Shown: positions 1,784 to 59,667, counted from the stretch's first letter. The stretch: DNA of 64,000 nucleotides from IMGVR_UViG_3300027816_000052:186001-250000, one strand, 5' to 3'. Notes: generated by a model not told the origin, from the sequence alone. Numbers and translations: made by a program.

Positions 1784-1807
1784 TTATTTATGTTTAAAGA
1801 ATAGAAT

Positions 1808-3658: not shown

Positions 3659-3681
3659 ATGGTTAAAAAAACTAAAATATA

Positions 3682-6318
3682 ATGTCTTATCAATATTGTA
3701 GTGGTGGTTCTTATTGCTTTTCTTCAAACACTACTAGTGTAACAGCAAGTACTATTGGTTGTTTATCTAAAGTAGATAATGTTCAATATAGTATTAATGG
3801 TACAAGAATCTATAATACAAATTTTACTAATGAATCGATTTATGCTGAATTTCCATCTGACCCCGGATTTTTGGGTATTCAAGCGAATTTAACTTCACCA
3901 GCAACTCAGTGGGGATCAACAGGAAATTCAATTTTTGGTCCCATGAATAGACAAGCTGTTTGGTATGACGGAGATTGCAATGGGTCAACAGAAATAATTT
4001 CAGGTGAATTAACTCTTAGTTATTATTTTTATAATTCAGGAACAACAAATCAGTATTATCTAGGTTTTGGGGCTTGGATTTATCCAACAGGACAAATAAA
4101 TTTAACAATAAATAATGATATTATTTTATCTGGTGATGCGTCTATAATTGGTTCAAATTCACAACTCTATCATAGATTTTGGCACATAATTCCAATTACT
4201 TTACTATCTTGTGATAATCATATTAATTTAACAATTACTTCGTCAGGTATTATTCAAAATGCGGTTGGTTTAGTAATATATGATAGCACATATTCTGAAA
4301 TTATTAATGCGACTAATGATAATGATTTGGATATTATTTATAGTACAAATTCTTTATTAACCACAGCAGGAAAAACTGGACCTTTTGTTAAGGCGGGATG
4401 TCCGTCAGGATACATGTTAAGCGCAAATACGCTTACTGCAACTTGTATAACAACAATTTATACTGGTTGTACCTGTAATTGTTGCGATAGATACCAAATT
4501 GGTAGAATATTTGGAAATGATAATTTTGTGTATAATGATTGTAATAATCAACCAAAAATTATAACAAATTTAAATGCTGGTGAATCAATACAAATTTGTG
4601 CATGTTCTATAATAACTCCTAAAACACTATTGGGTAATAATACTTGGAGTGCGGGTAATGGTCAATTTAGAATTGTTTTAATAACATCTTGTGATAGTAG
4701 TTGTATACCAATTCCCGATGGTCCTCCCCCAACACCAACACCAGAACCAACTTGTTCTGATTGTGGATTTACAATGATTTCAGTTGGTGATAGACATACG
4801 GTGGGTATTAGTGGTGATACATTATTTTCTTGGGGAAGCAATTCAGTTGGTCAATTAGGTTTAGGATATACTGGCGGTTCTTTCTATATACCACAACAAA
4901 TGATAGACCCAACAAGTGGTGCATACCCTTGGGTTTATGTAGAAGCTGGTTTAGAATCAACATTTGCAATCAATTCAAATGGGGATTTATTTGTTTGCGG
5001 TAATTCTTCCTCAAATAATGGTGGAGATCAACTAGGATTAAACGATGGTATATCTAATATTGATACATTAACTCAAGTCACCTCACCAACCCCAAATGGG
5101 TGGTTAAAAATATGGTCAAAAAATACAGCAACAATTGCTCTTAGAAGTAATGGTACAATTTGGGGAACAGGTTTTAATGAAAAATATCAATTAGGTTTAG
5201 GTGATAATTTAGATAAAATGCAATTTACACAGATTGGTTCTGATACAGATTGGGAAGAAATTGCTAGAGGATTATTTCATACGCTTGGTTTGAAAAATAA
5301 TGGAACTATTTATTCTTGGGGAACTAATTTAACAATTCCTCAGAGAAACCCATTAGGATTAGGTGCGGGACCAGCTAATCAAGAAGCTCAAATACCAACA
5401 CAAATTACAATACCAACATACCCATTATATTCAAATAGTGTTGTGTTTAATCAAATATCCGCAGGAAATTATCATTCCGTTGCATTAGCTGATAACACAT
5501 CAATATGGGGATGGGGACAAAATACCCAAGGTCAGTTAGATTGCTTTAATTGTGGTTCGGTTGATAATTCAAGACCGTTTCCTATGGATGGTGGAATTTC
5601 TGTAAATCCACCAAGTTCTCAATCTGAAGGTGCTAATACAAATTCAGGATATACATCAGTAATAGCTGTTGGTGATATGACATTAGCCATTACGTCTGGT
5701 ATAACTTTAAATTTTGCACCATTTACTGCACCAAATGGTGTGAATTGGACACCGAATTTAAATGGTGACAGAATTTGGACTTGGGGTGAAGGATATGGAT
5801 CAAATGTAAAAACACTTTTACAAGACAATATTGATAGAATTAATTTAGAAACAAAAAATGATTGGTGTTATGTCTGGGCTGGTGGTCAAGCGGAACAAGG
5901 CGGCATTGGAACTCAAAACTTAGTTTTTTTCGCAAAAGATATTAATGGTACAATATTTACATGGGGTACCAATTCATACGGTCAGTTAGGCGTTGGACAA
6001 AACCCAATTTGTCCTGTTTGTGATAATGACTATGTTAATCCAATTGGGTTGTGTTTTAACTCAATAGATTCGGAATGTCCATGTCCTGATTGCGAATGTG
6101 TTACATATACTTTAAGCAATTATTCTACACTTGAAGTACCGTTTACTTATATTGATTGTAATAACACATTAATAAATTCAATATTAGGTAGAGGTGGTCT
6201 TGGTCCATCGACAACAACTGTCACAATTTGTGCTTGTTTAAATACAATAGTTATTGATGAAAATATCAATCCTAATTTTGTTAATATAACAACAGATCAA
6301 ACCCCTTGTGAATCATGA
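3682..6318 (+). CDS. RCC1-repeat protein, probable virion/adhesion protein
   Basis: Repeated WGSNSVGQLGLG, WGQNTQGQL, WGTNSYGQLG and ISAGNYHSVAL motifs. Confidence 0.75.
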   Translation: MSYQYCSGGSYCFSSNTTSVTASTIGCLSKVDNVQYSINGTRIYNTNFTNESIYAEFPSDPGFLGIQANLTSPATQWGSTGNSIFGPMNRQAVWYDGDCNGSTEIISGELTLSYYFYNSGTTNQYYLGFGAWIYPTGQINLTINNDIILSGDASIIGSNSQLYHRFWHIIPITLLSCDNHINLTITSSGIIQNAVGLVIYDSTYSEIINATNDNDLDIIYSTNSLLTTAGKTGPFVKAGCPSGYMLSANTLTATCITTIYTGCTCNCCDRYQIGRIFGNDNFVYNDCNNQPKIITNLNAGESIQICACSIITPKTLLGNNTWSAGNGQFRIVLITSCDSSCIPIPDGPPPTPTPEPTCSDCGFTMISVGDRHTVGISGDTLFSWGSNSVGQLGLGYTGGSFYIPQQMIDPTSGAYPWVYVEAGLESTFAINSNGDLFVCGNSSSNNGGDQLGLNDGISNIDTLTQVTSPTPNGWLKIWSKNTATIALRSNGTIWGTGFNEKYQLGLGDNLDKMQFTQIGSDTDWEEIARGLFHTLGLKNNGTIYSWGTNLTIPQRNPLGLGAGPANQEAQIPTQITIPTYPLYSNSVVFNQISAGNYHSVALADNTSIWGWGQNTQGQLDCFNCGSVDNSRPFPMDGGISVNPPSSQSEGANTNSGYTSVIAVGDMTLAITSGITLNFAPFTAPNGVNWTPNLNGDRIWTWGEGYGSNVKTLLQDNIDRINLETKNDWCYVWAGGQAEQGGIGTQNLVFFAKDINGTIFTWGTNSYGQLGVGQNPICPVCDNDYVNPIGLCFNSIDSECPCPDCECVTYTLSNYSTLEVPFTYIDCNNTLINSILGRGGLGPSTTTVTICACLNTIVIDENINPNFVNITTDQTPCES

Positions 6319-19218: not shown

Positions 19219-21546
19219 ATGAATATTTCAATAGAAAAATTAGATAACCCCTATGTACAGATTGTTTGGGAGGATTCACCAGAAAATTTCACGCAGGAAA
19301 GAATTAAGCGTGTCAAAACATATTTTTCAAAGAAGTATAATACCTCTAATGTTAACATTGTTTTAAAAACAATCCTTGAGAAAGAAGAAGAGGATACAAC
19401 TGTTGACACCTCTTTTAACATTCTAGATAAAAATTATCAACTTGATGTTGTTAAAAATTATTTAACTCAAAAAGGTCTTGAGAATTCTTATGAGGATGTT
19501 GTTGGAATAAACAACATTGTTGAAAATAATTTGGTATTAAGTAACCCAGATATTTCACCATTTAAAAAATGGTATATCAAAAAAATTGAATTTTCAAATT
19601 TTTTATCGTATGGTGAGGACCAAGTTTTGGATTATGAAACATTAAGAGGTATTAGTGTTATTGAGTCGAATCCAAAAAATTTCGGGGGTAAAACAATTTT
19701 AGGGCTGGAATTACTTTTATATCTATTTTTTAACTCAACATCTAGAACTTCAAAAGCTGAAGATATCTTTAATAAATTCTCAGATAAGAATAAGGTCACT
19801 GTAAAGGGAACTATTAATATTGATGGTGAAGATTATGTGATTATTAGAACCGCAGAAAGAAAATTAAATAAAACAGGTGAGTGGAATGTAAAAACCGAAC
19901 TTGATTTTTTTAAAGTTCTTCCAGATGGTGAGCTTCAAAATTTCACAGGAGAACAAAGAAGAGAGACTGAGAAATTTATAAAAACATCAATTGGTGAACA
20001 AGAAGATTTCTTAATGACTATTCTAACAACATCTTCCAATCTAGAAGAACTCTTAGAAGCAAAACCCACCGCTAGAGGTCAAGTTTTAAGTAGATTCCTT
20101 GGGTTAGATGTTCTTAAGAAGAAAGAAGAAATAGCTAAAGAGCTTTACTCGAATTATTCAAAAGGAATGCTTTCAAATGTGTTTAATGTTGAGCAATTAA
20201 AAAATGACAATATTGAACATGAAAAAATGATTGGTATTTTAAACGATTCTAATAAAGAACTTGATGTTAAATTAAATGAGGTTATCGAGAAGATTAAAAT
20301 CGGTGAAAAATACCGCGAAGATTTATTAAAAACAAAACATTCTGATATTGACAAAGATTTGATTATCTTTGAACCCGAAAAAGCTAAAAACGACATTATA
20401 AAGATAACCAAAGAAAAGACTGATTATCAAAAAGAATTATCCGTCCTTAAAGTAGTTGAACCATCGGAATTTTATCATGAGGATAAACATGATGAAGTTA
20501 AAGAAAAAATCACAACTAGAAAAAGTGAAGTTGCTGTTATAGGTAGTCAATTACGAGAAATTGATTCATTAATGTCTAAGTACTCAAATGGGATAAAATG
20601 TGAGCACTGCGGAATTGAATTAATAAATGCAACATATACGCAGGAAAAAATTTCTAGAAAAAATGATTTAACCGACAAATTAAATTTAATTAATAATGAA
20701 CTAAATTCATTATCTGTTAGTGAACAAAGTTTTACTAAATTAAAGAAAGAATTTGATGAATATGAAAAAGCAAAATTAATTAAGGAGAAATTTGAAGTTA
20801 GTATTGATGCTTGCGATATTAAAATAAACTCTATTGAGGAAAAAATTAATCGATATAATGATGCACAAAGTAAAATTGCAGATAATCAAAAGATTGATGG
20901 TCTGCTAATAAAAGCAAAAGTTAGGATTGATGAATTAAATTCGGATAAAGATAGGGTAAACAAAGAAATTAATAACAACAATTTCCAGATTAAATCTTAT
21001 CATCAGAAAATAGATGAGAACAATAAGAGAATTATTAAAATTGCTGAAGAATTTGAAAAAGAGAAAATATATAAAATATATCTTGATATTTACGGTAAAA
21101 ATGGAATTTCAAAAATTATAATGAAATCTATGATTCCATTAATTAATTCTGAACTCCAAAGACTTCTTGAGGATTCCGCATTATTTACTCTTCAAATTAA
21201 AATAAATGATAAAAATGAAGTTGAGTTCTGGATGACGGATAACTCAAGCGGAATTGAAAAACTTATGGTCACAGGTTCTGGTTATGAAAGAACAATTGCA
21301 AGTCTAGCCCTTAGGTCCGTTCTGTCAAAAGTTTGTTCATTACCGAAACCGAATATTATAGTATTCGATGAGATTTTTGGTAAAGTATCTGATGATAATT
21401 TAGAAATGGTTGGAGAGTTCTTCAAGAAAATAAAGGAGTATTTTGACAAAATCTTAATTATTACACATAATCCATTAGTATCAAATTGGGCTGATAGTAT
21501 AATTAAAATTAAGAAAGAAAATAACATTAGTAAGATTGTTAATTAA
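19219..21546 (+). CDS. sbcC: Rad50/SbcC-like (T4 gp46-like) SMC ATPase
   Basis: NFLSY, GGKT Walker A, CEHC zinc hook in a coiled coil, GSGYE signature, IIVFDE Walker B and ITHN H-loop. Confidence 0.9.
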   Translation: MNISIEKLDNPYVQIVWEDSPENFTQERIKRVKTYFSKKYNTSNVNIVLKTILEKEEEDTTVDTSFNILDKNYQLDVVKNYLTQKGLENSYEDVVGINNIVENNLVLSNPDISPFKKWYIKKIEFSNFLSYGEDQVLDYETLRGISVIESNPKNFGGKTILGLELLLYLFFNSTSRTSKAEDIFNKFSDKNKVTVKGTINIDGEDYVIIRTAERKLNKTGEWNVKTELDFFKVLPDGELQNFTGEQRRETEKFIKTSIGEQEDFLMTILTTSSNLEELLEAKPTARGQVLSRFLGLDVLKKKEEIAKELYSNYSKGMLSNVFNVEQLKNDNIEHEKMIGILNDSNKELDVKLNEVIEKIKIGEKYREDLLKTKHSDIDKDLIIFEPEKAKNDIIKITKEKTDYQKELSVLKVVEPSEFYHEDKHDEVKEKITTRKSEVAVIGSQLREIDSLMSKYSNGIKCEHCGIELINATYTQEKISRKNDLTDKLNLINNELNSLSVSEQSFTKLKKEFDEYEKAKLIKEKFEVSIDACDIKINSIEEKINRYNDAQSKIADNQKIDGLLIKAKVRIDELNSDKDRVNKEINNNNFQIKSYHQKIDENNKRIIKIAEEFEKEKIYKIYLDIYGKNGISKIIMKSMIPLINSELQRLLEDSALFTLQIKINDKNEVEFWMTDNSSGIEKLMVTGSGYERTIASLALRSVLSKVCSLPKPNIIVFDEIFGKVSDDNLEMVGEFFKKIKEYFDKILIITHNPLVSNWADSIIKIKKENNISKIVN

Positions 21547-50274: not shown

Positions 50275-50364
50275 GCAGGTGCGGTATTATAGCACAGAAC
50301 TTGATTTGAAAGACGAAACCTTTTTCTTTTCTTTTTGTGTGGTGGGAAAATAAAATTTAAAATA

Positions 50365-52338
50365 ATGAATAAAGTATTATTACCAAAAGAAGAAATTACA
50401 CAGAAGTTAGATAGAGATAAACTTACTTTATTGAACGCTTCTATCAAAGATTATGTGAACAACTTGTATGAAAATTCAAATGATGAATACATTATACAAG
50501 ATGGTGAACCATACGCCAATGGAGAATTACATTTGGGACATTTTTTAAACAAAACCTTGAAAGATTTTGTTGTAAAATATTACTTAACAAAAGGTAAGAA
50601 AGTTAGGGTTTCATTTGGTTGGGACTGTCATGGTTTACCCATTGAAAATAAAGCAAAAGAAATGAGTGGTGATTTAATTCAAAATGCTAAATTAGTCGCA
50701 ACCAAATATTGTGATATTCAAAATAAAACTCTTGAACTTTTCGGGATTTATCCAACTGAAGGTAGGTTTAAAACTATGGATATTGATTTTATAGAAAGAG
50801 AATTATATATATACCACCAACTACTAAATGCGGGTCTAATTCTTAAAAAGAATAAGCCTACTTGGTACTCACCAACATTAAAAACAGTATTGGCTAACTC
50901 AGAAATTGAATATAAAAAAATAGAAGATGAATCTTTGTATTTTCTATTCAACTCTGATAGTTTTAAATTACTTGTTTGGACAACAACAGAATGGACTGTA
51001 AACGGAAATCAGGCAGTATGTTTAAGTAATAATATAAAATATGTTAAAACTGTTGACAATATTATTTGTAGTGAAAGTTTTGCTATTGAAAATAATTTAG
51101 ATTATGATTTGTTTGATGTGAGTAATATTAAGTCATATCATAACCACAATGGAGATTTATGTCCAATTATTTATGATGACTACGTTTCAGATGATAAAAC
51201 AGGTATAGTACATCTTTGCGGTGGACACGGTGATGAAGATTATCGAATTTTAATGGATAATAACATAACCCCCAAAAATGTGTGCGATAAAATCGGCTTA
51301 TTAAAACACATAGAAGATTTTAAAATTGATGAAAAGTTTGTATATAAACGTGAAATTTACACACACGATTATCCAATTGATTGGCGTGAAGGGAATAAGG
51401 TGTATAAAGTATTAACGGAACAAACGTATCTTGATTTTGATTTAAACAAAATAAAGACTTGTTTAAAAGAAATAAAGTTATCATCAAAAGACAGAAATCG
51501 TTTATCAACGACAATATTTTCACGCAAAGATTGGTGTATTTCAAGACAAAGAAAATGGGGTGTTAAAATACCTAATAGTAATGATATATTGGATGTTTGG
51601 TTTGATAGTGGTTCTACATTTATGATGTATGATAAACCTGCCGATATATACATTGAAGGTTCAGACCAACACAGAGGGTGGTTTCAAAGTTCGATTATAT
51701 TAGCATCAATGATTGGTCGAGTACCAACAAAAAGAATAATAACACACGGATTTATTGTTGATAACACATTAGAAAAACTATCAAAATCAAAAGGTAATGG
51801 CGGAAGTTTGGAAAAGCTGTATGAAACATATAACCCTGATGTATTAAGACTATGGGTTTTACTGTCAGATTTTAAAAACGATATTGTCTTTTCGGAAGAT
51901 TCATTAAAAAACTCTGGTAAACAATATTTTAAAATAAGAAACTTTCTCCGTTATTTATTTAATAATCTATATATATATGATTATGATGAAACAAAAGTTG
52001 ATGAAAATATTTTTTTTAAAGTAAAAGAGTTGGAAAATAAATTTGATTTACTTGTCAATGAATTTGATTTGAATAAAGCAGTAAGGGGTTTTGTTGAATT
52101 TATAAACTATTATTCATCTTTGTTGACGGAGGATATTAAAAATGAATTTTATGAATCTGACACAAATTCCAATATGAGAATTAAATATGAAACAGAGTTT
52201 TACTATGTTTTAAAACACTTAAATAAACTACTTTTTTCGATTTTACCATTTCTTTCTATGGAAATAAAAAAAGCGTGGGAAGAAAAAAGAAAAGAAAAAG
52301 ATTTACATGTAGGGACTATATTTGGAAACGAGATGTAG
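50365..52338 (+). CDS. ileS: Minimal isoleucyl-tRNA synthetase (cassette 1)
   Basis: DGEPYANGELHLGH, GWDCHGLPIE, WTTTEWT, DWCISRQR, DVWFDSG, EGSDQHRGWFQS and KLSKS. Likely start at 50365 (657 aa). Confidence 0.9.
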   Translation: MNKVLLPKEEITQKLDRDKLTLLNASIKDYVNNLYENSNDEYIIQDGEPYANGELHLGHFLNKTLKDFVVKYYLTKGKKVRVSFGWDCHGLPIENKAKEMSGDLIQNAKLVATKYCDIQNKTLELFGIYPTEGRFKTMDIDFIERELYIYHQLLNAGLILKKNKPTWYSPTLKTVLANSEIEYKKIEDESLYFLFNSDSFKLLVWTTTEWTVNGNQAVCLSNNIKYVKTVDNIICSESFAIENNLDYDLFDVSNIKSYHNHNGDLCPIIYDDYVSDDKTGIVHLCGGHGDEDYRILMDNNITPKNVCDKIGLLKHIEDFKIDEKFVYKREIYTHDYPIDWREGNKVYKVLTEQTYLDFDLNKIKTCLKEIKLSSKDRNRLSTTIFSRKDWCISRQRKWGVKIPNSNDILDVWFDSGSTFMMYDKPADIYIEGSDQHRGWFQSSIILASMIGRVPTKRIITHGFIVDNTLEKLSKSKGNGGSLEKLYETYNPDVLRLWVLLSDFKNDIVFSEDSLKNSGKQYFKIRNFLRYLFNNLYIYDYDETKVDENIFFKVKELENKFDLLVNEFDLNKAVRGFVEFINYYSSLLTEDIKNEFYESDTNSNMRIKYETEFYYVLKHLNKLLFSILPFLSMEIKKAWEEKRKEKDLHVGTIFGNEM

Positions 52339-52345
52339 CACTTGC

Positions 52346-52465
52346 TTATAACGGTTGCAAATATAAAACGTTTTAAACTAAACTTAAATTGAAAAACAGT
52401 ATATAAATATAAACCAACAATAAATTTGGAACGCTGAAATAAATGTTTTATATTTGTTGTTATAA
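52346..52465 (+). repeat. attC-like hairpin (120 bp)
   Basis: TTATAAC-GGTTG-CAAATATAAAAC...GTTTTATATTTG-TT-GTTATAA. Confidence 0.85.
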
Positions 52466-52485
52466 ACACGTTAAATTATTTTATT

Positions 52486-52764
52486 ATGAAAACATATAAT
52501 GTAAAGTATGATGTTGGACAAGAAGTATATATACTTTTATCCAAAAAAATATTTAAAAGTAAAATTGAAAAGATTAGAATTGTTCATGGGGTACCTTATA
52601 TCAAAGGCGAAACAATGGAACAAATGGATGGAATTGAAATTGATTACTTGGTTGTAGTTAATGAACAATTCTATCCTTCAGGTGGACATTTATCTAGTTA
52701 TGATTGGTATAAACAGGATGATATTTTTTTGGATAAAGATGAACTGTTGCGGAAAATAATTTAA
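52486..52764 (+). CDS. Cassette 2 hypothetical protein
   Basis: ORF between the 52459 GTT and the 52775 AAC. Confidence 0.7.
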   Translation: MKTYNVKYDVGQEVYILLSKKIFKSKIEKIRIVHGVPYIKGETMEQMDGIEIDYLVVVNEQFYPSGGHLSSYDWYKQDDIFLDKDELLRKII

Positions 52765-52768
52765 TTGT

Positions 52769-52822
52769 TTATAACGTCTGATGATAAACAATCGTTTTAA
52801 TGTGTTTTATTTGCTGTTATAA
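52769..52822 (+). repeat. attC-like hairpin (54 bp)
   Basis: TTATAAC-GTCTGATGATAAACAATCG...GTTATAA; near-copy of 57404-57457. Confidence 0.8.
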
Positions 52823-52846
52823 GTATGTAATTTACAATTTATACCT

Positions 52847-53092
52847 ATGAAAAAAACGAAAAGAAAAATACATATTGGAAATGACCTATGGTTTTATTGG
52901 GTTGGTTCTGGTAGATGGGGTGAGGTAACTCATGTAACGATATGTTCACCAGATGAACAATATTATAAAATAGATGCAAGTGATGTTGCAAGTAGTGAAA
53001 TGTATGTTGGTGCGGAAGGGTCATTTCCAACACAAATATTACCGTCAAAAGTTAAAGAATATATTGAAAATAAAATAATAAATAAATTTTAA
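52847..53092 (+). CDS. Cassette 3 hypothetical protein
   Basis: ORF between hairpins. Confidence 0.7.
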   Translation: MKKTKRKIHIGNDLWFYWVGSGRWGEVTHVTICSPDEQYYKIDASDVASSEMYVGAEGSFPTQILPSKVKEYIENKIINKF

Positions 53093-53100
53093 ATTATTAC

Positions 53101-53195
53101 TTATAACGGTTGGGTGTATGAGAAGGTTTGCTTAGATGAACTTTCAAATTAACCACTGAACTTTATAGCAAACTTTCTTATACACCTTGTTATGT
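53101..53195 (+). repeat. attC-like hairpin (95 bp)
   Basis: GGTGTATGAGAAGGTTTGCT / AGCAAACTTTCTTATACACC stem. Confidence 0.88.
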
Positions 53196-53263
53196 GTAGG
53201 TGTGGTTAATTAAGGTAGAATGTTAAATAGTAGAAATGAACAAAAATTTTAAAAGAAAAATAT

Positions 53264-53674
53264 ATGAATTATAAACAAAAAATTACAACTATCAATTATT
53301 TTGAAAAGGTGGTTAAAATTTCTCTAACAAGAGAAGAGTGGAATTCATCTGGAACTTGGGTAGAGTCAATGATGAAAAAAGGTTGTGAAAGACTGAGTAA
53401 GGATTGGTTTGAAGATTTACATCACTTAGTTATGCGACCAATAAGTGACGAAATAAACTTTTCTGGTAAAAACTATACTTATGATGTGGATATAACATTT
53501 GATATACCAAGAGAATTACTGAGAATGTTTGTATATTCAATCGGTCAAATTGCTTATGATTTTGATGTTAAAGGTATAACTTCGGTTACTGCTCAAAATA
53601 TAGTGGGAAAAATAAACAAACAATTAAAAGAACAACTACCAAATGATGATAAATGGTTTCATTATGGATTTTGA
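53264..53674 (+). CDS. Cassette 4 hypothetical protein
   Basis: ORF between hairpins. Confidence 0.7.
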   Translation: MNYKQKITTINYFEKVVKISLTREEWNSSGTWVESMMKKGCERLSKDWFEDLHHLVMRPISDEINFSGKNYTYDVDITFDIPRELLRMFVYSIGQIAYDFDVKGITSVTAQNIVGKINKQLKEQLPNDDKWFHYGF

Positions 53675-53732
53675 TTTTTCTTTTAAAATTTTCAACCGAA
53701 ATGTTGATTAGAACGATGAACGGAACGCTTAC

Positions 53733-54208
53733 ACATAACGTATATCGGCTAAACGCAGTATTTAAAAACTTTTGCGAGGGAAATAATTAATCAATTAAAT
53801 AATAATAATTAAAAACAAAAAGTAAAATGGAAATCAAAACAAAATTTGACGTAAACAATTTGGTGAAAAGAAAATTCGACACCAATTCAAAGAACCAGAT
53901 GAGTGCTTTGGAAGTAATGGAAGTGATTGCACAAACTTGCTATGCAGGAACGCAGGTATTTTATTTGTGCAAACATGTAATTGCTCAAAAGGAATTTGTA
54001 GAAAAGTATTCTGAAAAAGGAGAATTTACTTGGGTGATTGCTCACAGTATTTCACAAGAAGAAAATCAGGCAGGATGGAGAAAATACCGTGAAGATGAAT
54101 TGATAGAAGCACCAAAAGAAGTGATTGACATTATACTTGGTAATTCTTAATTGTTCAATTGTGCGGTGGGAAAGTTTTTAAATATTGTCGTTTTAGCCGT
54201 TGTTATGC
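53733..54208 (+). repeat. attC-like hairpin with a gene in its loop (476 bp)
   Basis: CGGCTAAACGCAGTATTTAAAAACTTT pairs with AAAGTTTTTAAATATTGTCGTTTTAGCCG. Confidence 0.8.
53827..54150 (+). CDS. Hypothetical protein inside the attC-like loop
   Basis: 107-aa ORF with an A-rich leader. Confidence 0.7.
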   Translation: MEIKTKFDVNNLVKRKFDTNSKNQMSALEVMEVIAQTCYAGTQVFYLCKHVIAQKEFVEKYSEKGEFTWVIAHSISQEENQAGWRKYREDELIEAPKEVIDIILGNS

Positions 54209-54273
54209 GAAGGTGTGGCAACTCCAAAATTTCAAATTATAGACAAAACTTTCTTGCCACACTTTTGCATAAC
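54202..54273 (+). mobile_element. Empty cassette body (cassette 5, 72 bp)
   Basis: GTTATGCGAAGGTGTGGCAA...TTGCCACACTTTTGCATAAC with no ORF between. Confidence 0.8.
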
Positions 54274-54351
54274 GGTTGTAAATATGAGAAGTAAATTTTA
54301 CCTATAAAAATTAGATAAATCAAAATTTATTTCTTATATTTGTTGTTATAA
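54267..54351 (+). repeat. attC-like hairpin (85 bp)
   Basis: AAATATGAGAAGTAAATTTT / AAAATTTATTTCTTATATTT stem. Confidence 0.85.
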
Positions 54352-54382
54352 GTATGTAAAACAAACTAAATAATAATTAAAT

Positions 54383-54613
54383 ATGAAAATTGAAGGTCAA
54401 ATTACGCTAGATGGTATATTATATACACTGTTTATTTTATTCTGTTTATTTTTAACAATAGGTAGTTCTATTAGTGGGTGGTGGTATTTATCACACTTTG
54501 GATTCAGTGTAAAACAATTTTTGGTAAATATTTTAGTTTCGTCTTCAACTTTATTTATGATCTGGATGATTTTCACTAAAATATTTATTATAAAAATAAA
54601 CAGAATAAAGTAG
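54383..54613 (+). CDS. Cassette 6 small membrane protein (2 TM)
   Basis: Two hydrophobic helices. Confidence 0.7.
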   Translation: MKIEGQITLDGILYTLFILFCLFLTIGSSISGWWYLSHFGFSVKQFLVNILVSSSTLFMIWMIFTKIFIIKINRIK

Positions 54614-54626
54614 TTTGTTTTATTAC

Positions 54627-54757
54627 TTATAACGGTTGAGTATAACCGAAGGTGGGGATTAGAAGTGCCGAACCCTGACTTACCTACAAAAGTAAATTAG
54701 AAGCACAATATCTGAATGTTGGAACTACACCCCACTTTTGGTTATACTTTGTTAGGT
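54627..54757 (+). repeat. attC-like hairpin (131 bp)
   Basis: AGTATAACCGAAGGTGGGG / CCCCACTTTTGGTTATACT stem. Confidence 0.88.
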
Positions 54758-54777
54758 GTATGTAAATTTTACGGATT

Positions 54778-54966
54778 ATGAAAGATATACAACTGTTAAT
54801 TGATATGAAAGTTTCTTTAGGTAGGGAAACATTATTATTTCAGATACTTGGTAAGTATGGTGATAAAATACCAATGGAACTTCAAGAAGAACTACGAAAA
54901 TTGGCAGAAGAAGAAAGAAACTTTGGTGAAATGAAGAAACGAACTTTGAAGGGTGTGTTGGAGTAA
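54778..54966 (+). CDS. Cassette 7 hypothetical protein
   Basis: 62-aa ORF between hairpins. Confidence 0.65.
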   Translation: MKDIQLLIDMKVSLGRETLLFQILGKYGDKIPMELQEELRKLAEEERNFGEMKKRTLKGVLE

Positions 54967-54976
54967 AATTTATTAC

Positions 54977-55069
54977 ACCTAACGGTTGGGTGTATGAAAC
55001 GTAGCCACGCACAATACTTAATATAAACCACAGACCTTAATTGGCTATGTTTTATACACGATGTTAGCA
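54977..55069 (+). repeat. attC-like hairpin (93 bp)
   Basis: GTGTATGAAACGTAGCCA / TGGCTATGTTTTATACAC stem. Confidence 0.88.
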
Positions 55070-55175
55070 GTAGTACGGATTTAAACTACAAATGCTCATT
55101 CGGAGAACTGAACCTTTTTCTTTTCTTTTTTGTGGGTTGGACAAAATAAATTTGAAAAATTTAAAAATAAATAAT

Positions 55176-55409
55176 ATGAAATTAGAAACAATTGTAAAAG
55201 TTACACCAGATGGTGGAGTTGAAATTCCTTCTGATATGAAAGTTGGAACTGGATTGATGAATATGGTAAAAGAATTACGTGATAATGAATGGAGAACATT
55301 TGAACATCACGATAATTGGATTAAAAACGAACATTATCCAAATCCAACATTTGAACAACAATTTGATACAGGTAATGCTTATAAAGAAATGTTAAAAACT
55401 AAAATTTAA
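55176..55409 (+). CDS. Cassette 8 ORF a
   Basis: Likely start at 55176; the track's start at 55092 lies in the cassette flank. Confidence 0.6.
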   Translation: MKLETIVKVTPDGGVEIPSDMKVGTGLMNMVKELRDNEWRTFEHHDNWIKNEHYPNPTFEQQFDTGNAYKEMLKTKI

Positions 55410-55413
55410 AACT

Positions 55414-56013
55414 ATGATGAAAATTGAAGCAAAAAAAGACGGTAAAGGAAACATTGTAATATCGGAAGATTCCTTTGAAATGATACTGGCTTGTTTAGAT
55501 AATCAAAAATTTGTTGGTGAACAGCCACAAAATGGTGATTCGCTTTCGGTAGGCGAAGACAACTATTGGAAAGGACAAGAAGATATTCAAAACACTATTG
55601 ACCATTATAATAGAGAATGTAGAAAAATATTACATCAAAAATATGTTTTAAGAACAGAATCTGATGGTTATTTTCTTGCTAAAAAATATGAACATCAAAC
55701 AGAAGATACTGAATGGACTGGTGAAGATGTTGGATTAGTGTATGAACTATTCAAAGATACAAGAATAATTTATAATGAAACAAGAGATTTATTACCATTA
55801 GATGGTAGTGAAGAAATTAAGGAAGGAAGTACTCCAATTGGTAAAACAAAAGATGGGTGGATTGCAGTTGAACAAGAATCAAGACCTTGGTTAATTGAAA
55901 GAGCATTGGGATATGATGGTGATTATTTAACAATTTCTGAAGATGGCAGTAAGAATAGACCTTGGAAACAAGATGAAATTCGAAAAATTATAAACATATT
56001 TAATAATAAATAA
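55414..56013 (+). CDS. Cassette 8 ORF b
   Basis: 199-aa ORF. Confidence 0.7.
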   Translation: MMKIEAKKDGKGNIVISEDSFEMILACLDNQKFVGEQPQNGDSLSVGEDNYWKGQEDIQNTIDHYNRECRKILHQKYVLRTESDGYFLAKKYEHQTEDTEWTGEDVGLVYELFKDTRIIYNETRDLLPLDGSEEIKEGSTPIGKTKDGWIAVEQESRPWLIERALGYDGDYLTISEDGSKNRPWKQDEIRKIINIFNNK

Positions 56014-56014
56014 A

Positions 56015-56422
56015 ATGGGAATATTTGATTGTTTAATAGATAAAGACAATGGAAAACCAAAATCTGATATGGAATATATTTACAGATTAGATATGGTTTG
56101 GATACCTAACAAACTTGAAAGTAAACCAATTAAAATTGGAACGATAATGAATAATGTTATTCAACGAGATAATGGCAGTTATGAATTTACTTGTAAAGAA
56201 ACTGGTGAAAGATTACAAGCAACTTATTCTTGGGCTTTGGCTGAAAACACACCAGAAAATGTTGAAAGAATAAAAATATATGATGATGAATATTTAAAAT
56301 TCAAAGAATACGAAAGAAAAATAAATTCTTTGAGAAATAATATTATTACTCTTAAAGAGCGTGGAGAAAAAAGAAAAGAAAAAGATATTGCAGATGAAAC
56401 TCAAATCGGAGAACAAATGTAG
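56015..56422 (+). CDS. Cassette 8 ORF c
   Basis: 135 aa; the C-terminus reads through the cassette 3' flank. Confidence 0.7.
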   Translation: MGIFDCLIDKDNGKPKSDMEYIYRLDMVWIPNKLESKPIKIGTIMNNVIQRDNGSYEFTCKETGERLQATYSWALAENTPENVERIKIYDDEYLKFKEYERKINSLRNNIITLKERGEKRKEKDIADETQIGEQM

Positions 56423-56428
56423 TATTAC

Positions 56429-56487
56429 ACATAACGGTTCGGCGGGTTGCCGTTGTGCATTCAATAACGGCAACCCGACTGTTATGC
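56429..56487 (+). repeat. attC-like hairpin (59 bp)
   Basis: CGGGTTGCCGTT / AACGGCAACCCG perfect stem. Confidence 0.88.
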
Positions 56488-56527
56488 GGGGTCATTCTTT
56501 TTCACTCGGTAAAAAGCAAAAGGTACA

Positions 56528-56830
56528 ATGGCAAAAAGGAAGTTAGGCCCATCGAGCGGCAAGTGCTCCAAGTGCGGAGGTCACATCAGCATCAATCCAC
56601 CAAGACCGTGCCGCCGCTGCTCAGGCGAAAAGCCTCAGGCGAGCTCGGAAAAGAAAGAGCGCGTGTTCACCGAGAGCGAGGTGAAGGCGATGGTGCGAGA
56701 GATTCTCGCAGAACAGGAACGACTGCATATAAGCGATGGATCCGGAGGACACGATATTGTGTGGGCGGTCGGGATCGGAGAGGTCGAGGCGGTGTTTAAA
56801 GCGCACGGCATTGTTCTCGATCCCGCATAA
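56528..56830 (+). CDS. Cassette 9 GC-rich zinc-ribbon protein
   Basis: CSKC...CRRC; the stop codon TAA lies inside the GCATAAC core. Confidence 0.7.
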   Translation: MAKRKLGPSSGKCSKCGGHISINPPRPCRRCSGEKPQASSEKKERVFTESEVKAMVREILAEQERLHISDGSGGHDIVWAVGIGEVEAVFKAHGIVLDPA

Positions 56831-56954
56831 CGGTTGACGGTATGAAAAGTTGGGGATTAAAAGATATAAACTTTCGCACCGATACAATGATAATTAATAG
56901 TACAAACCTTCGGGAACGCACACACGCCCCAATTTTTTATACCGTGTGTTATGC
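56825..56954 (+). repeat. attC-like hairpin (130 bp)
   Basis: ACGGTATGAAAAGTTGGGG / CCCCAATTTTTTATACCGT stem. Confidence 0.88.
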
Positions 56955-56975
56955 CCCGTTTTTATCCAATTTTTT

Positions 56976-57398
56976 ATGTTACAAGACGAATTAGCATTAC
57001 AATATAAATACAAAAAACTTCCATCAGAATTATCTGACAAGGTAAGAAACCAATATTTGTCTGAAATACCAAAATGTTTGAATATCAATGGTGATTCTGA
57101 ATTTGAGTTAAAAACAGCAAACGGTACAATAATTTCAAAAGGATATGAAAGAATTGTAATTGGAGATTATGGAGCGTTTATTGAATTTAACAGAAATCAA
57201 GTTATTGACGAAAATATTTGTATTCAAAAGGGGCAAGAATATAGAATTAACGATGAAAAATATAGTAAGAATGTGAAATATTTTTGGTTGACTGCAAAAG
57301 ATTCATCGTGTATAAAGATATATTTACAACAGAAAACGGTATCATACGCAGATTATAAACCAAATATGTATTACGTGTCTCCATTTGAGGTTTTTTAA
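56976..57398 (+). CDS. Cassette 10 hypothetical protein
   Basis: GYERIVIGDYGAFIEF; likely start at 56976. Confidence 0.7.
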   Translation: MLQDELALQYKYKKLPSELSDKVRNQYLSEIPKCLNINGDSEFELKTANGTIISKGYERIVIGDYGAFIEFNRNQVIDENICIQKGQEYRINDEKYSKNVKYFWLTAKDSSCIKIYLQQKTVSYADYKPNMYYVSPFEVF

Positions 57399-57403
57399 AT
57401 GGG

Positions 57404-57457
57404 GAATAACGTCCGATGATAAACAATCGTTTTAATGTTGTTTATCATTTGTTATGT
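57404..57457 (+). repeat. attC-like hairpin (54 bp)
   Basis: ATGATAAACA / TGTTTATCAT stem. Confidence 0.85.
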
Positions 57458-57536
57458 GTAGGTGTGGATTATTAAGGTGGAATGTTTAATCGGAGAACTG
57501 AACAAAAATTTTAAAAGAAAAATTAATATATAGATT

Positions 57537-57761
57537 ATGGGAAACATAGTTAAAAAATTTGAAAACTTTAAAGATGGGTTATACGTCACATGTAAAAACG
57601 CACCAGAAGATAATTACCAACTTCATAATAAAAAGGATTATTTGGTTATTAAATATGATAACCAACCGTATGGTGTTGGACGAGTAACTATATTTAACCC
57701 TTCAAGTAGAAAGGAAGAAACATATCCTAAAACTATGTTTAGTGAACCATTTAACAAATAA
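57537..57761 (+). CDS. Cassette 11 hypothetical protein
   Basis: 74-aa ORF. Confidence 0.65.
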   Translation: MGNIVKKFENFKDGLYVTCKNAPEDNYQLHNKKDYLVIKYDNQPYGVGRVTIFNPSSRKEETYPKTMFSEPFNK

Positions 57762-57819
57762 TTTTTCTTTTAAAATTTTAAACATAGATGTTGATTAGAA
57801 CGATGGGTGGAACACTTAC

Positions 57820-57952
57820 ACATAACGTTTCGCAGCTTGGCGAGGTGCGGGATTTACAGCACTAAAGACGATTAGAATTACAAATTTTTAAATAAAAAAC
57901 AATATGTCAAACGAAGTACAAAACCCCGCATCTTGCCAAACTGCTGTTATAT
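57820..57952 (+). repeat. attC-like hairpin (133 bp) containing the start codon of the next gene
   Basis: GCAGCTTGGCGAGGTGCGGG / CCCGCATCTTGCCAAACTGC stem; ATG at 57904. Confidence 0.88.
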
Positions 57953-58185
57953 GCCGCCTTTTTGATTTGGGAAGGAAAGGGTTAACATGGGATTGGTCAA
58001 AATTGGAACTGAAAAAACAATACTTTATCAGTCGTGAAGATGTTTTGAATATGAATATGCTTTGGCAACTTGCACAAGGTGGTATAACTGAACAAGCACA
58101 ATCTTTGAATGCAGAAGTATTGATTTGGGAAGATGTCATAAAAAACGGATGGTACTTGTTGCTGAGACCGCAAGGTGGCATATAA
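57904..58185 (+). CDS. Cassette 12 protein starting within the upstream hairpin
   Basis: The first ~15 codons (MSNEVQNPASCQTAV) are hairpin sequence. Confidence 0.65.
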   Translation: MSNEVQNPASCQTAVICRLFDLGRKGLTWDWSKLELKKQYFISREDVLNMNMLWQLAQGGITEQAQSLNAEVLIWEDVIKNGWYLLLRPQGGI

Positions 58186-58313
58186 CGGTTTGCGTATTGC
58201 TGACGTTGCCAATTTGAAACACAAATGTTGAATTAAAAACAAAAAAATAAATATGAAAATCAGAGTTGAAGTTAAAGACGAAGCTGGCAATGTTCAGCAA
58301 TACGTTGTTAGGC
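58180..58313 (+). repeat. attC-like hairpin (134 bp) containing the start codon of the next gene
   Basis: CGTATTGCTGACGTTGCCA / TGGCAATGTTCAGCAATACG stem; ATG at 58253. Confidence 0.88.
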
Positions 58314-58471
58314 GCAGTTACTTGGTCAAATTTGTTGACCCGAAGAAAGAGTATCCTGTTACCTACACAATTAAACACGATGGCACAAGAGTAAATGAAC
58401 CTGCAATGCTCAAAGGCGAAGATTTAACCGAAAATCAAATTGCACAACTTTTCTCGAAGGGTTTGTTGTAA
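58253..58471 (+). CDS. Cassette 13 protein starting within the upstream hairpin
   Basis: The first ~19 codons (MKIRVEVKDEAGNVQQYVV) are hairpin sequence. Confidence 0.65.
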   Translation: MKIRVEVKDEAGNVQQYVVRRSYLVKFVDPKKEYPVTYTIKHDGTRVNEPAMLKGEDLTENQIAQLFSKGLL

Positions 58472-58475
58472 TTGC

Positions 58476-58570
58476 GCCTAACGATTGGGTGTATATGTAG
58501 TTTTTTATTTGGAAATGTCAAAACTTATTCGTACCTTTGTAAAAAAAATTACATATACACCTTGTTATGT
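58476..58570 (+). repeat. attC-like hairpin (95 bp) with a promoter in its loop
   Basis: GGTGTATATGTAGTTTTTT / AAAAAATTACATATACACC stem. Confidence 0.88.
58508..58539 (+). promoter_or_regulatory. Bacteroidota housekeeping-type promoter inside the attC-like loop
   Basis: TTTG-N20-TACCTTTG. Confidence 0.75.
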
Positions 58571-58601
58571 ATAGTTTATTCACAAATTAAAATAAAAGTT
58601 T

Positions 58602-58808
58602 ATGAAACAACCAAAAATTAAAATAACCGACATTCACGGTAAAGACTGGGGTATTAAAAAAGTAAAAACACTTCATTGGAATTTGGACGGAAAATTAAAC
58701 ACAATTCAAGTTGATTTTTCTGGAACTATGGATATGTATGATTTAGATGATGAAGGCGTTTTTACTAATCCACATGGTAATATGAAAGGCGTTATCATTT
58801 GGGAATAA
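58602..58808 (+). CDS. Cassette 14 hypothetical protein
   Basis: 68-aa ORF. Confidence 0.65.
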   Translation: MKQPKIKITDIHGKDWGIKKVKTLHWNLDGKLNTIQVDFSGTMDMYDLDDEGVFTNPHGNMKGVIIWE

Positions 58809-58813
58809 ATTAT

Positions 58814-58866
58814 ACATAACTAGTATATATAAGTAAGTATAATCTAACCACTTAAAAATAAAGGAC
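58814..58866 (+). other. Candidate attI-like half-site between the last cassette and the recombinase
   Basis: ACATAAC is followed by TAGTATATATAAGTAAG rather than by a hairpin; no partner GTT arm. Confidence 0.5.
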
Positions 58867-59667
58867 TTGAATAATAAAATTATTAAGATTTGTGAAGAAA
58901 AGTTTATATATTTAAACTATTCACCAAGAACAAAAGATAATTATCTTTCACATATAAAAAATTTCTTAAATCACATTGGTAGTAAACAAGTAATACATTG
59001 TAATGCTCAAGATTTTCAATCCTATTTAGATAATTATAAATTCACTTCAACAGCACAACAAAACCAAATCATTAACGCAATAAGATTTCTCTACAAATTT
59101 GGTCTTAATAAAAAATATGATAAAATATCGTTTAAAAGACCTAAATCTGAGAAGAAACTACCAAAAGTAATTGATTCAAATTCAATCATTGATAAATTAA
59201 ATAAGATTGATAATCTCAAACACAAAGCAATTCTCACCTTAACTTTTTCAGTTGGTCTACGAGTCTCAGAAATAATTAATCTTAAAATAGAGGATATTGA
59301 TTCCAAGCGAATGTTAATCCACATTAAGAACGCAAAAGGAAGAAAAGATAGAGTTGTTCCATTATCTCAAAATGTATTAAGACTATTAAGAACTTATTAT
59401 AAAAATTATATCCCAAAGGAATATCTCTTCAATGGACAAAACAGTACTAAATATTCAATAGGTAGTTGTCAGAAAATATACAAAAAATATATTGAATCTG
59501 ATGGACATATACACACACTTAGACACAGTTTTGCAACATCCTTATTAGAAAATGGAACAGATTTAAGAATTATTCAAAAAATTCTTGGTCATTCAAATGT
59601 TAAAACCACAGAAATATACACACACGTTTCAAATCAAATTTTGAACAAAATTAATTTGCCAGTTTGA
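58867..59667 (+). CDS. Compact tyrosine recombinase (integron-integrase-like, lacking the IntI insertion)
   Basis: SAM-like N-terminus YSPRTKDNY, GLRVSE (R), AKGRKDR (K), HTLRHSFAT (HxxR), LGH and TEIYTH (Y). TTG start. Confidence 0.92.
   Translation: MNNKIIKICEEKFIYLNYSPRTKDNYLSHIKNFLNHIGSKQVIHCNAQDFQSYLDNYKFTSTAQQNQIINAIRFLYKFGLNKKYDKISFKRPKSEKKLPKVIDSNSIIDKLNKIDNLKHKAILTLTFSVGLRVSEIINLKIEDIDSKRMLIHIKNAKGRKDRVVPLSQNVLRLLRTYYKNYIPKEYLFNGQNSTKYSIGSCQKIYKKYIESDGHIHTLRHSFATSLLENGTDLRIIQKILGHSNVKTTEIYTHVSNQILNKINLPV

Follow-up and report, generated by a model that had tools for sequence, protein, structure and literature searches.

Introduction

Integrons, comprising an IntI integrase, an attI site and attC cassette arrays, place a tyrosine recombinase next to a conserved primary site and an array of small cassettes, in either the classical or the "inverted integrase" (Treponema-type) layout (PMC3607928). 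Canonical attC sites are imperfect palindromes flanked by the inverse core RYYYAAC and core GTTRRRY boxes, with an unpaired central spacer of 5-6 nt on each arm and two or three extrahelical bases on the arm opposite the AAC triplet of the recombined strand (PMC5027507). The site lies 3' of its ORF, and the recombined strand is antisense to the ORF. Arrays with attC-type sites have been reported in phage genomes, including those of virulent phages of marine Bacteroidota, but these are sporadic arrays of canonical sites recombined by IntI1 better on the bottom strand, and no conserved partner recombinase, attI-like site or reversed gene polarity was described for them (Qi et al. 2023, PMC9892861). 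XerC/D also recombine single-stranded substrates (PMC5027507), as in the recombination of the folded CTX phage attP hairpin with dif (IMEX elements), where a single strand is probably exchanged on an imperfectly paired dif-like core and the product resolved by replication. CTX phage, however, uses host enzymes and integrates a whole phage genome once.

Here we analyze a 64,000-nt stretch of DNA (IMGVR_UViG_3300027816_000052:186001-250000; hereafter, the window), which is part of a 256-kb IMG/VR record of a large freshwater phage. The original prediction held that attC-like hairpins in this window mostly combine a 5-6 nt left spacer with a 2 nt right spacer, carry G.T wobbles on the + strand and constitute a distinct attC class whose recombinogenic strand is the ORF sense strand.

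Results

Inspection of the window confirmed the presence of 13 AAC...GTT inverted-repeat sites, all in one orientation (Table 1). The distance from AAC to the stem is 5-7 nt (GGTTG in 5 of 13 sites; 5 nt in 8 of the 11 sites parsed by our detector), whereas the distance from the stem to GTT is 1-3 nt, usually TT. In the stems of the 11 parsed sites we identified 15 G.T and 2 A.C mismatches, and no other kind. All 13 sites fold more stably on the + strand with DNA parameters. The original prediction of a G.T pair at stem position 13 in at least 10 of 13 hairpins is slightly generous: the pair is exact in a common register in seven sites (S1, S3, S5, S6, S7, S9 and S13), and lies within 1-2 positions, or next to a small bulge, in three more (S8, S11 and S12). 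The entries for S2 and S4 in the original list are also corrected in Table 1. To determine whether these sites could arise by chance, we searched with a covariance model (R1) built from related sites. The model hits 11 sites, plus S2 weakly, on the + strand, only inside the array and nowhere else in the window or the 256-kb record. The only two minus-strand hits are the same sites at much lower scores. A search of Rfam, which has no attC family, gave 0 hits.

Table 1. Features of the cassette array and adjacent recombinase. Positions are counted from the first letter of the window; spacers are given as AAC-to-stem/stem-to-GTT.
Feature	Position	Strand	Spacers (nt)	G.T stem positions	R1 score (bits)	Description
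Array	52352..58819	+				13 cassettes of 296-1452 bp, each running from the C of one AAC box to the AA of the next, hairpin first and then the ORF or ORFs on the + strand
Hairpin S1	52346..52465	+	5/2	13	40.8	Distal in the array; directly follows the stop of the aaRS gene
Hairpin S2	52769..52822	+			19 (E 0.25)	Short degenerate copy of the S10 type
Hairpin S3	53101..53195	+	5/2	8, 13	93.4 (33.3 on -)	
Site S4	53733..54208	+			not hit	AAC box and left arm (about 53745-53755) separated from right arm and GTT box (about 54190-54204) by ORF 53827-54150
Hairpin S5	54267..54351	+	6/3	8, 13 (common register)	61.7	
Hairpin S6	54627..54757	+	5/2	10, 13	50.5	
Hairpin S7	54977..55069	+	6/3	8, 13 (common register)	73.1	
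Hairpin S8	56429..56487	+				GC-rich; belongs to the GC-rich cassette that follows it
GC-rich cassette	56435..56830	+				Hairpin S8 plus ORF 56528-56830; 55% GC against 21-38% for the other cassettes; bounded by AAC boxes at both ends
Hairpin S9	56825..56954	+	5/2	8, 13	58.2	
Hairpin S10	57404..57457	+				Short 54-nt type with an 11-bp perfect stem; high-copy repeat in the source community
Hairpin S11	57820..57952	+				Start codon of ORF 57904-58185 lies inside its loop
Hairpin S12	58180..58313	+				Start codon of ORF 58253-58471 lies inside its loop
Hairpin S13	58476..58570	+	5/2	13	84 (37.4 on -)	
attI-like junction	58812..58866	+				Lone ACATAAC box (AAC at 58818-58820) followed by TAGTATATATAAG (AAC plus this sequence, 58818-58833)
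Tyrosine recombinase	58867..59667	+				266 aa, Xer-like/integron-like

To assess whether this site grammar extends beyond the window, we examined related viral contigs. Homologs of the recombinase at 55-100% identity occur in 80 viral contigs, and arrays of the same polarity lie directly upstream of these homologs in more than 50 of the loci. In 333 sites from these contigs, spacers are (5,2) or (5,1) in 250, and stem mismatches are G.T in 462 cases, A.C in 75 and other in 61, with G on the 5' arm in 407 of 462. Stem position 13 is G.T in 103 of about 108 long sites and in 33 of 34 aligned sites, and the pair next to the core is G.U in 34 of 34. The TAAC and GTTA boxes are invariant in 152 of 152 aligned sites, and 17 of 25 consensus pairs show compensatory changes, indicating that pairing is under selection. 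Stem positions 1-7 are about 100% Watson-Crick and ungapped, and the non-Watson-Crick positions are G.T pairs with a base on both arms. On the + strand the spacer is partly paired through G.T, leaving a 3-nt bulge. The 5/2 strand is more stable in 292 of 309 sites, by a mean of -2.7 kcal/mol.

The predicted product of the gene adjoining the array matches Pfam Phage_integrase (E 1.9e-37), and its catalytic motifs GLRVSE, HTLRHS, LGHS and IYTH align with XerA and IntIA. The protein is closest to XerA/XerC/XerD, with XerA_Arch as its best NCBIfam match (195 bits, against a cut-off of 220). The integron integrase model TIGR02249 scores 161 bits against a cut-off of 265, and matches in two pieces that skip model positions 205-255. 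The alignment to XerA is continuous, whereas query residues 175-208 stand against VchIntIA residues 178-259, leaving about 48 VchIntIA residues without a counterpart. The enzyme hence lacks the IntI-specific insertion (I2 helix region). Upstream of the recombinase gene, the part of the attI-like junction after AAC is conserved in about 50 related loci (TAAC followed by TATTATATATA, 45-75 bp before the start codon), while the part before it varies. An assembly-graph node starting at 58820 was observed in three runs.

To delineate the mobile unit, we compared cassettes shared between arrays. HSP ends fall at AAC boxes 28 to 0 on the left and 14 to 2 on the right, the two exceptions falling at GTT boxes. 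The upstream hairpin travels with the ORF 15 to 0, based on 7 independent cassette families plus the GC-rich cassette of the window. The GC step of the latter, and its homolog in another array (L291/L284), break at AAC on both sides. Furthermore, in the related locus L066 an exact duplicate cassette abuts the attI-like site, where it was re-inserted. The mobile unit is therefore the hairpin plus its downstream ORF, not an ORF plus its downstream hairpin. One pair of cassettes in the window (53189-53740 and 57451-57825), however, shares its flanks but has different upstream hairpins; together with the two ends at GTT boxes, this indicates that some exchange at the other box, or hairpin replacement, also occurs. 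The box extensions pair within a cassette (82-86% Watson-Crick at positions 2-5), as expected for a circular intermediate, whereas within an array hairpin they pair only at the random level of about 30%.

Lastly, we identified hairpins of the same class in Bacteroidota chromosomes. These share the 5-6 versus 2-3 nt spacers, the G.T pairs at the same distances from GTT and the GTGTAT stem motif, and are associated with recombinases at 40-50% identity that also lack the insertion. Their arrays, however, lie downstream of the recombinase gene, and their ORFs lie on the strand opposite the G.T strand, as in classical integrons. In phage arrays, ORFs lie on the G.T strand in 247 of 255 units and in 78 of 80 units.

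Discussion

The results presented above are best explained, with fairly good but not full confidence, by a phage-borne analog of an integron, made up of a short Xer-like tyrosine recombinase, a double-stranded attI-like site just upstream of its gene, and thirteen cassettes that each start with a hairpin-forming site and continue with one to three + strand ORFs up to the next AAC box. We found no published description of this family. Genes in the array are transcribed toward the attI-like site, which is neither the typical divergent layout nor the Treponema layout (PMC3607928).

Both components of the original interpretation are supported. The spacer asymmetry, the lack of bulged bases on the arm opposite AAC, with fixed G.T wobbles in their place, and the type of partner recombinase support a distinct class of sites, although this assessment does not include a score from the standard attC covariance model. 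That the ORF-sense strand is the folded substrate is inferred, in the absence of a recombination assay, from the location of the attI-like site and the recombinase at the 3' end of the ORFs and from the cassette boundaries. A tyrosine recombinase cuts the strand on which its binding arm lies 5' of the cut, and only the folded + strand then gives crossovers at the AAC box. The cut site and the cut strand rest on analogy with integron integrases and Xer recombinases. Structural analogy alone does not decide the strand, since the - strand form places the 3-nt bulge on the arm opposite AAC, where canonical extrahelical bases sit.

In the reaction that we propose, the + strand, which is the sense strand of both ORFs and recombinase, folds, and the TAAC and GTTA boxes pair to form one binding arm, which in an excised circle extends to at least 12 bp. 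The stem base, with its conserved T-A, A-T, T-A at positions 5-7, forms the second arm. Between the arms lies a 7-bp, partly wobble-paired center (C-G, G.T, G.T, then 4 bp), carrying a 3-nt bulge (TTG) on the strand that is cut. The recombinase would cut after ATAA, between the AA and the C of the AAC box, on the folded + strand and exchange that strand with attI or with another hairpin, with resolution probably by replication, as in integrons and CTX phage. The population data, which are limited to assembler contigs with ambiguous joints, provide no read-level evidence of excised circles, and folding in vivo remains an inference. The fixed G.T wobbles next to the AAC/GTT core, at stem position 13 and often at position 8, plus a T.G at arm position 8, keep the + strand helix intact and become A.C mismatches on the - strand. 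They are therefore the likely strand-selection marks, in place of the extrahelical bases of canonical attC sites.

Among alternative explanations, the least unlikely is that the sites are recombined, by the phage enzyme or by host XerC/D, as ordinary double-stranded Xer/dif-like cores centered on the AAC box, as in the pdif modules of Acinetobacter plasmids, with folding playing no part. The CATAA arm followed by a 6-7 nt center appears to resemble dif sites, the recombinase is closest to Xer proteins, and crossovers at the AAC box would also be expected. However, the sequence on the inner side of the AAC box varies between cassettes and co-varies with a partner 40-120 nt away, the GTTA box is invariant and strand-asymmetric wobbles sit at fixed positions, and a purely double-stranded core requires none of these three features.

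It is also unlikely that the hairpins act mainly in RNA, as terminators, processing sites or translational regulators, with the G.T bias reflecting tolerated G.U pairs. G.U pairs are normal in RNA, the wobbles lie on the coding strand in phages and array sequence is present in contigs of a metatranscriptome run, but in bacterial arrays of the same class the mRNA would carry A.C mismatches. In addition, there is no T run after the stems, and the invariant boxes, the attI-like site, the linked recombinase and cassette-level mobility have no role in an RNA model. A position that is always G.T and never G-C or A-T argues for a specific mark, not for tolerance.

Similarly, we regard as improbable that the hairpins are MITE- or REP-like palindromic repeats spreading in intergenic DNA and merely punctuating a hypervariable region of the phage. 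The S10-type hairpin reaches depths of 300-2600x in metagenome contigs, and MITE surveys report hairpin repeats shared between Flavobacterium and its phages (PMC11602168). Nonetheless, all sites in the 256-kb record lie in one array, in one orientation, next to one recombinase; the unit that moves includes the ORF; cassette ends are complementary as expected of a circular intermediate; and a conserved attI-like end site is present.

The weakest alternative, an ordinary integron fragment (a CALIN) of canonical attC sites recombining through the strand antisense to the ORFs, with each cassette an ORF plus its downstream site and the nearby recombinase unrelated, is suggested by the AAC/GTT boxes, imperfect palindromes and small promoterless ORFs and by the known phage CALINs with canonical, IntI1-active attC sites (PMC9892861), but, without a score from the IntegronFinder attC model, it is contradicted by the cassette boundaries, and further opposed by an array that starts with a complete hairpin beside the aaRS gene and ends with a lone AAC box at a conserved site, by the linkage of recombinase and array in more than 50 contigs, and by the 5 versus 2 nt spacers and lack of extrahelical bases on the arm opposite AAC.

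The comparison with Bacteroidota chromosomes refines the original interpretation, in that the site class is not intrinsically read on the sense strand. The G.T strand follows the attI side rather than the direction of transcription, and what is reversed in phages is the gene orientation inside the cassette. We therefore read this system as an integron analog without the I2 helix or extrahelical bases, and with reversed cassette gene polarity in phages.

Genomic context and validation of the hairpin sites

The window lies in a 256-kb IMG/VR virus record (linear, CheckV 85%) at about 28% GC, which comes from a freshwater metagenome. Nearly all genes are on the + strand and include an SbcC-like nuclease, RNA ligases and a class I aminoacyl-tRNA synthetase. 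The SbcC-like protein is a subunit of a palindrome-specific nuclease, encoded here by a phage that maintains 13 long hairpin-forming sites. The synthetase ends 8 nt before the first hairpin, and the stretch that follows consists of small + strand ORFs separated by AAC...GTT inverted repeats, in which we located 13 sites (S1 to S13).

Coordinates of the array, its sites and cassettes, and neighboring features (positions within the window, bases 186001-250000 of the record)
Feature	Position	Strand	Description
SbcC-like subunit of a palindrome-specific nuclease	19219-21546		PHROG 77
Class I aminoacyl-tRNA synthetase	50335-52338		667 aa, tRNA-synt_1 family
Sites S1 to S13	52346-58570		AAC...GTT inverted repeats
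Cassette following S3	53189-53740		Shares flanks with the cassette following S10
Site S4 and the rest of its cassette	53733-54273		
ORF between the arms of S4	53827-54150		
Palindrome in the S4 cassette	54202-54273		72 nt
Three-ORF cassette	54983-56434		ORFs 55092-55409, 55414-56013 and 56015-56422
GC-rich cassette	56435-56830		Includes S8
S10-type hairpin	57404-57457		54 nt
Cassette following S10	57451-57825		Shares flanks with the cassette following S3
ORF starting in the loop of its upstream hairpin	57904 (start)		
ORF starting in the loop of its upstream hairpin	58253 (start)		
Last ORF, past S13	58602-58808		
Lone ACATAAC box	58818-58820 (AAC)		attI-like site
Recurrent assembly node	58820-58913		94 nt
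Region of the metatranscriptome contig over the recombinase gene	58820-59100		
Tyrosine recombinase	58867 (start)	+	266 aa

With DNA energy parameters, all 13 sites fold more stably on the + strand than on the - strand. An ungapped stem finder yielded AAC-to-stem spacers of 5-7 nt and stem-to-GTT spacers of 1-3 nt, and counted 15 G.T, 2 A.C and no other mismatches in the 11 stems that it parsed. The original prediction had placed a G.T at stem position 13 in at least 10 of the 13 hairpins; in a common register this pair is exact in seven sites and lies within one or two positions in three more. S2 is a degenerate copy of S10, and the two arms of S4 are separated by an ORF, so that the gene lies in the hairpin loop. 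The rest of the S4 cassette is a palindrome, GTTATGCGAAGGTGTGGCAA...TTGCCACACTTTTGCATAAC, again with G.T wobbles on the + strand. A covariance model built from related sites hits 11 of the 13 sites on the + strand, plus S2 weakly, and nothing else in the window or in the whole 256-kb record, although the whole-record search gave 41 bits to the palindrome of the S4 cassette. The only minus-strand hits are two of the same sites at far lower scores. The observation of these hairpins is real and is not a chance pattern. A scan of the window against Rfam matched no family, and the cassette proteins have no Pfam or PHROG match. One cassette holds three consecutive ORFs with no hairpin between them.

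A short Xer-like tyrosine recombinase flanks the array

Past S13 there is one more ORF, then a lone ACATAAC box, followed by a 266-aa tyrosine recombinase. Its best NCBIfam match is the XerA-type 'site-specific tyrosine recombinase/integron integrase' model, at 195 bits against a cut-off of 220, whereas the integron-integrase model TIGR02249 matches only in two pieces that skip positions 205-255. Against solved structures, the protein aligns continuously with Pyrococcus XerA, but with Vibrio IntIA it aligns in two blocks (query 17-174 with IntIA 17-177, and query 209-257 with IntIA 260-308), leaving about 48 IntIA residues between these blocks without a counterpart. This gap coincides with the part of the IntI model that is skipped, and we therefore take it to be the I2 region. 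The catalytic motifs are present.

Conservation of the hairpins and of an attI-like site in related viral contigs

Homologs of the recombinase at 55-100% identity occur in 80 IMG/VR contigs, many of them longer than 100 kb. In more than 50 of these loci, arrays of the same hairpins were detected directly upstream of the recombinase and on its sense strand, with 333 such sites against 11 of the opposite polarity. Spacers are (5,2) in 167 sites and (5,1) in 83, and stem mismatches are G.T 462, A.C 75 and other 61, with G on the 5' arm in 407 of the 462. The 5/2 strand is the more stable one in 292 of 309 unique sites. By position, TAAC and GTTA are invariant and the base after AAC is G in 99% of sites; stem positions 1-7 are about 100% Watson-Crick, with positions 5-7 conserved as T-A, A-T, T-A; position 8 is A-T or G.T; and position 13 is G.T in 103 of about 108 long sites and essentially never Watson-Crick. 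The 54-nt S10-type sites have stems that end at position 11. RNAalifold on 34 diverse sites gave 25 pairs, 17 of them with compensatory double changes, with G.U present in 34 of 34 sequences next to the core and in 33 of 34 at position 13. An independent set of viral arrays, retrieved by a DNA pattern rather than by the recombinase, shows the same picture (G.T 138 against A.C 13). In contrast, the nearest cultured relatives of the recombinase (Cellulophaga phage Ingeline, 41%; Polaribacter phage Freya, 36%) show no such hairpin arrays. In the ten Freya isolates (Freya_10, MT732472.1, and its sister records), the related integrase starts at positions from 83 to 4180 of records of 44.0-48.9 kb, which may mean a variable block of small ORFs upstream of it or may only reflect record start points; our detector found no hairpins of this grammar there.

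To examine the recombinase-proximal end of the arrays, we aligned the last 140 nt before the recombinase start in about 55 loci. These share (Y)TAAC followed by TATTATATATA(A/C), 45-75 bp upstream of the ATG, with conserved sequence to the right of AAC and variable sequence to its left. The window has ACATAAC followed by TAGTATATATAAG. The array therefore ends, on the recombinase side, in a half site joined to a conserved primary site, whereas on the far side it begins with a complete hairpin.

Delimitation of the cassette unit

To determine which hairpin belongs to which ORF, we compared all arrays with each other. Two contigs carrying the identical recombinase are the same phage with an identical array and gave no information on boundaries. 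Counting all homology ends seemed to put left ends at AAC and right ends at GTT, but this reflected hairpin-to-hairpin similarity and was resolved by restricting the analysis to long, high-identity matches containing an ORF. For matches of at least 200 nt and 85% identity, left ends fall at AAC boxes 28 times and at GTT boxes never, and right ends fall at AAC boxes 14 times and at GTT boxes twice. Among matches that cover one ORF segment and do not run into the neighbors, 15, from seven independent cassette families, include the upstream hairpin and exclude the downstream one, and none do the reverse. Junction sequences show identity starting at (T)AAC and ending at the next TAAC, as in the array pairs L032/L055 (100% over 315 nt), L059/L061 and L035/L062. 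Furthermore, in the array of L066 an exact 394-nt duplicate of an internal cassette sits in the recombinase-proximal position, abutting the attI-like sequence.

The window supplies its own case, as one cassette is 55% GC, against 21-38% for the other twelve. The GC step coincides with the AAC boxes on both sides, including the GC-rich upstream hairpin S8 and excluding the AT-rich downstream hairpin S9. An 86%-identical homolog lies in an array on 52%-GC metagenome contigs (L291, L284); similarity starts exactly at AAC, runs through the hairpin and the first half of the ORF, returns at the cassette's 3' end, TTCTCGATCCCGYATAAC, and stops there. This suggests cassette exchange between elements of very different base composition. 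Two more ORFs in the window start inside the loop of the upstream hairpin, and a boundary at the GTT box would cut them off from their start codons. The AAC-box rule is nonetheless dominant but not absolute, as shown by the few homology ends at GTT boxes and by one pair of cassettes in the window that share conserved 5' (GTTATGTGTAGGTGTGG...) and 3' (...TTGATTAGAACGATG..CTTACACATAAC) flanks but encode different ORFs (136 and 74 aa) and follow different hairpins (S3 and S10).

Outside the invariant TAAC/GTTA core, the sequence after a hairpin's GTT box pairs with the sequence before the next AAC box, which is the other end of the same cassette. Pairing is 82-86% Watson-Crick at positions 2-5 and about 75% out to position 12, with an invariant T.G at position 8, whereas with the AAC-side flank of its own hairpin in the array it is only at the random level of about 30%. 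This is expected if the functional folded site is that of an excised circular cassette, but on its own it does not decide polarity. In assembler contigs, the only population data examined, the S10-type hairpin reaches depths of 300-2600x in three metagenome runs, against about 5x for its flanks, indicating a community-wide, high-copy repeat found in many contexts. A 94-nt assembly-graph node beginning at the C of the attI AAC recurs in three runs, and in a metatranscriptome run the contig covering the recombinase gene has a mean depth of about 205, against 4-12 for contigs over the cassettes. The joints in these contigs have short sides and are ambiguous, and we do not count them as evidence of excision; none of these data prove excision or transcription.

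Inferred recombining strand

The results above place the crossover in the left (AAC) box. Tyrosine recombinases cut the strand on which their binding arm lies 5' of the scissile bond, which for integron integrases is AA/C on the folded bottom strand (PMC5027507). A monomer on the TAAC/GTTA arm of the folded + strand would cut ATAA/C in the left box, as observed, whereas on the folded - strand the equivalent cut would fall in what is the GTT box of the duplex, which is not observed. The + strand, which is sense for the ORFs and for the recombinase, is therefore the inferred substrate, as the original prediction had proposed for the ORF-sense strand. Relative to the recombinase gene and attI, this is the same polarity as in classical integrons, and what differs is the direction of the cassette genes.

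Related arrays in bacterial chromosomes

A scan of one genome per species revealed homologous recombinases at 40-50% identity, mostly in Bacteroidota, which also lack the insertion. In Polaribacter, Gaetbulibacter and Aquimarina, in an unnamed Bacteroidales chromosome-level MAG (L238) and in other loci (L226, L230, L233), arrays of the same grammar lie downstream of the recombinase, an example being CAAC-acc-GTGTATAATTAATTGC...GCAACTAACCATACAC-caaac-GTTG, the reverse complement of the phage type. Our model hits them on the strand antisense to the recombinase, the mismatches on the recombinase-sense strand are A.C 61 against G.T 3, and the ORFs lie on the recombinase-sense strand. This is the canonical relation, with the better-folding strand antisense to the genes, in the Treponema-type layout described previously (PMC3607928). 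In two further chromosomes, of Niabella ginsengisoli and Maribacter sp., hairpins of this class lie upstream of the recombinase on its sense strand, with ORFs mostly on the other strand, suggesting the classical divergent layout on only four sites each. No cassette protein is shared between the phage arrays and the bacterial chromosomal arrays sampled.

In viral contigs, by contrast, the ORFs are on the G.T strand in 247 of 255 units and in 78 of 80 units. The G.T strand therefore follows the attI side and not transcription, which argues against an RNA-structure explanation and against a purely mutational one. A Bacteroidota -7 promoter box (TAnnTTTG) in the right arm, which would have explained why hairpins precede genes, is present in only 22 of 309 sites.

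Relation to described integrons

Canonical attC sites have 5-6 unpaired nt on each arm and extrahelical bases on the arm opposite AAC, and recombine about 1000-fold better on the bottom strand. Phage-borne CALINs with canonical, IntI1-active attC sites have been published, IntegronFinder 2.0 reports almost no complete integrons in Bacteroidetes, and the tyrosine-recombinase classification notes an 'integron-like' subgroup in which the insertion is not fully conserved (PMC8138268). Full-text literature searches found no description of the family reported here. We therefore regard it as an integron variant and not as a member of the canonical attC/IntI families; several of their defining features were tested here and not found. 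IntegronFinder, which was not run here, calls a complete integron only with an IntI-type integrase, which these recombinases are not, and it therefore probably misses these elements.

A broader reading, which we consider about as likely as not, is that a widespread family of I2-less, integron-like recombinases in Bacteroidota and their large phages recombines folded hairpins lacking extrahelical bases and reads strand identity from fixed G.T wobbles, and that in the phage branch the cassettes are built the other way round, with the gene on the recombined strand and the hairpin in front of it. This would constitute a third integron architecture, and a natural test of whether the I2 helix and extrahelical bases are really needed for single-strand cassette recombination.

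Integron biology holds that bottom-strand selectivity fixes cassette orientation so that an attI-side promoter can express the genes, and that this selectivity depends on extrahelical bases read by the IntI-specific I2 helix. Although everything about the reaction itself is inferred, the arrays described here keep the integron logic (recombinase, attI, hairpin cassettes and circle-type ends) without either feature. In phages all genes point toward attI, and expression must therefore come from the phage's own upstream transcription or from the cassettes themselves. The family offers a natural system to ask how a Xer-like enzyme selects one folded strand, suggests an intermediate or parallel route from Xer recombinases to integron integrases, and shows that large environmental phages own a dedicated gene-capture platform full of ORFan genes.
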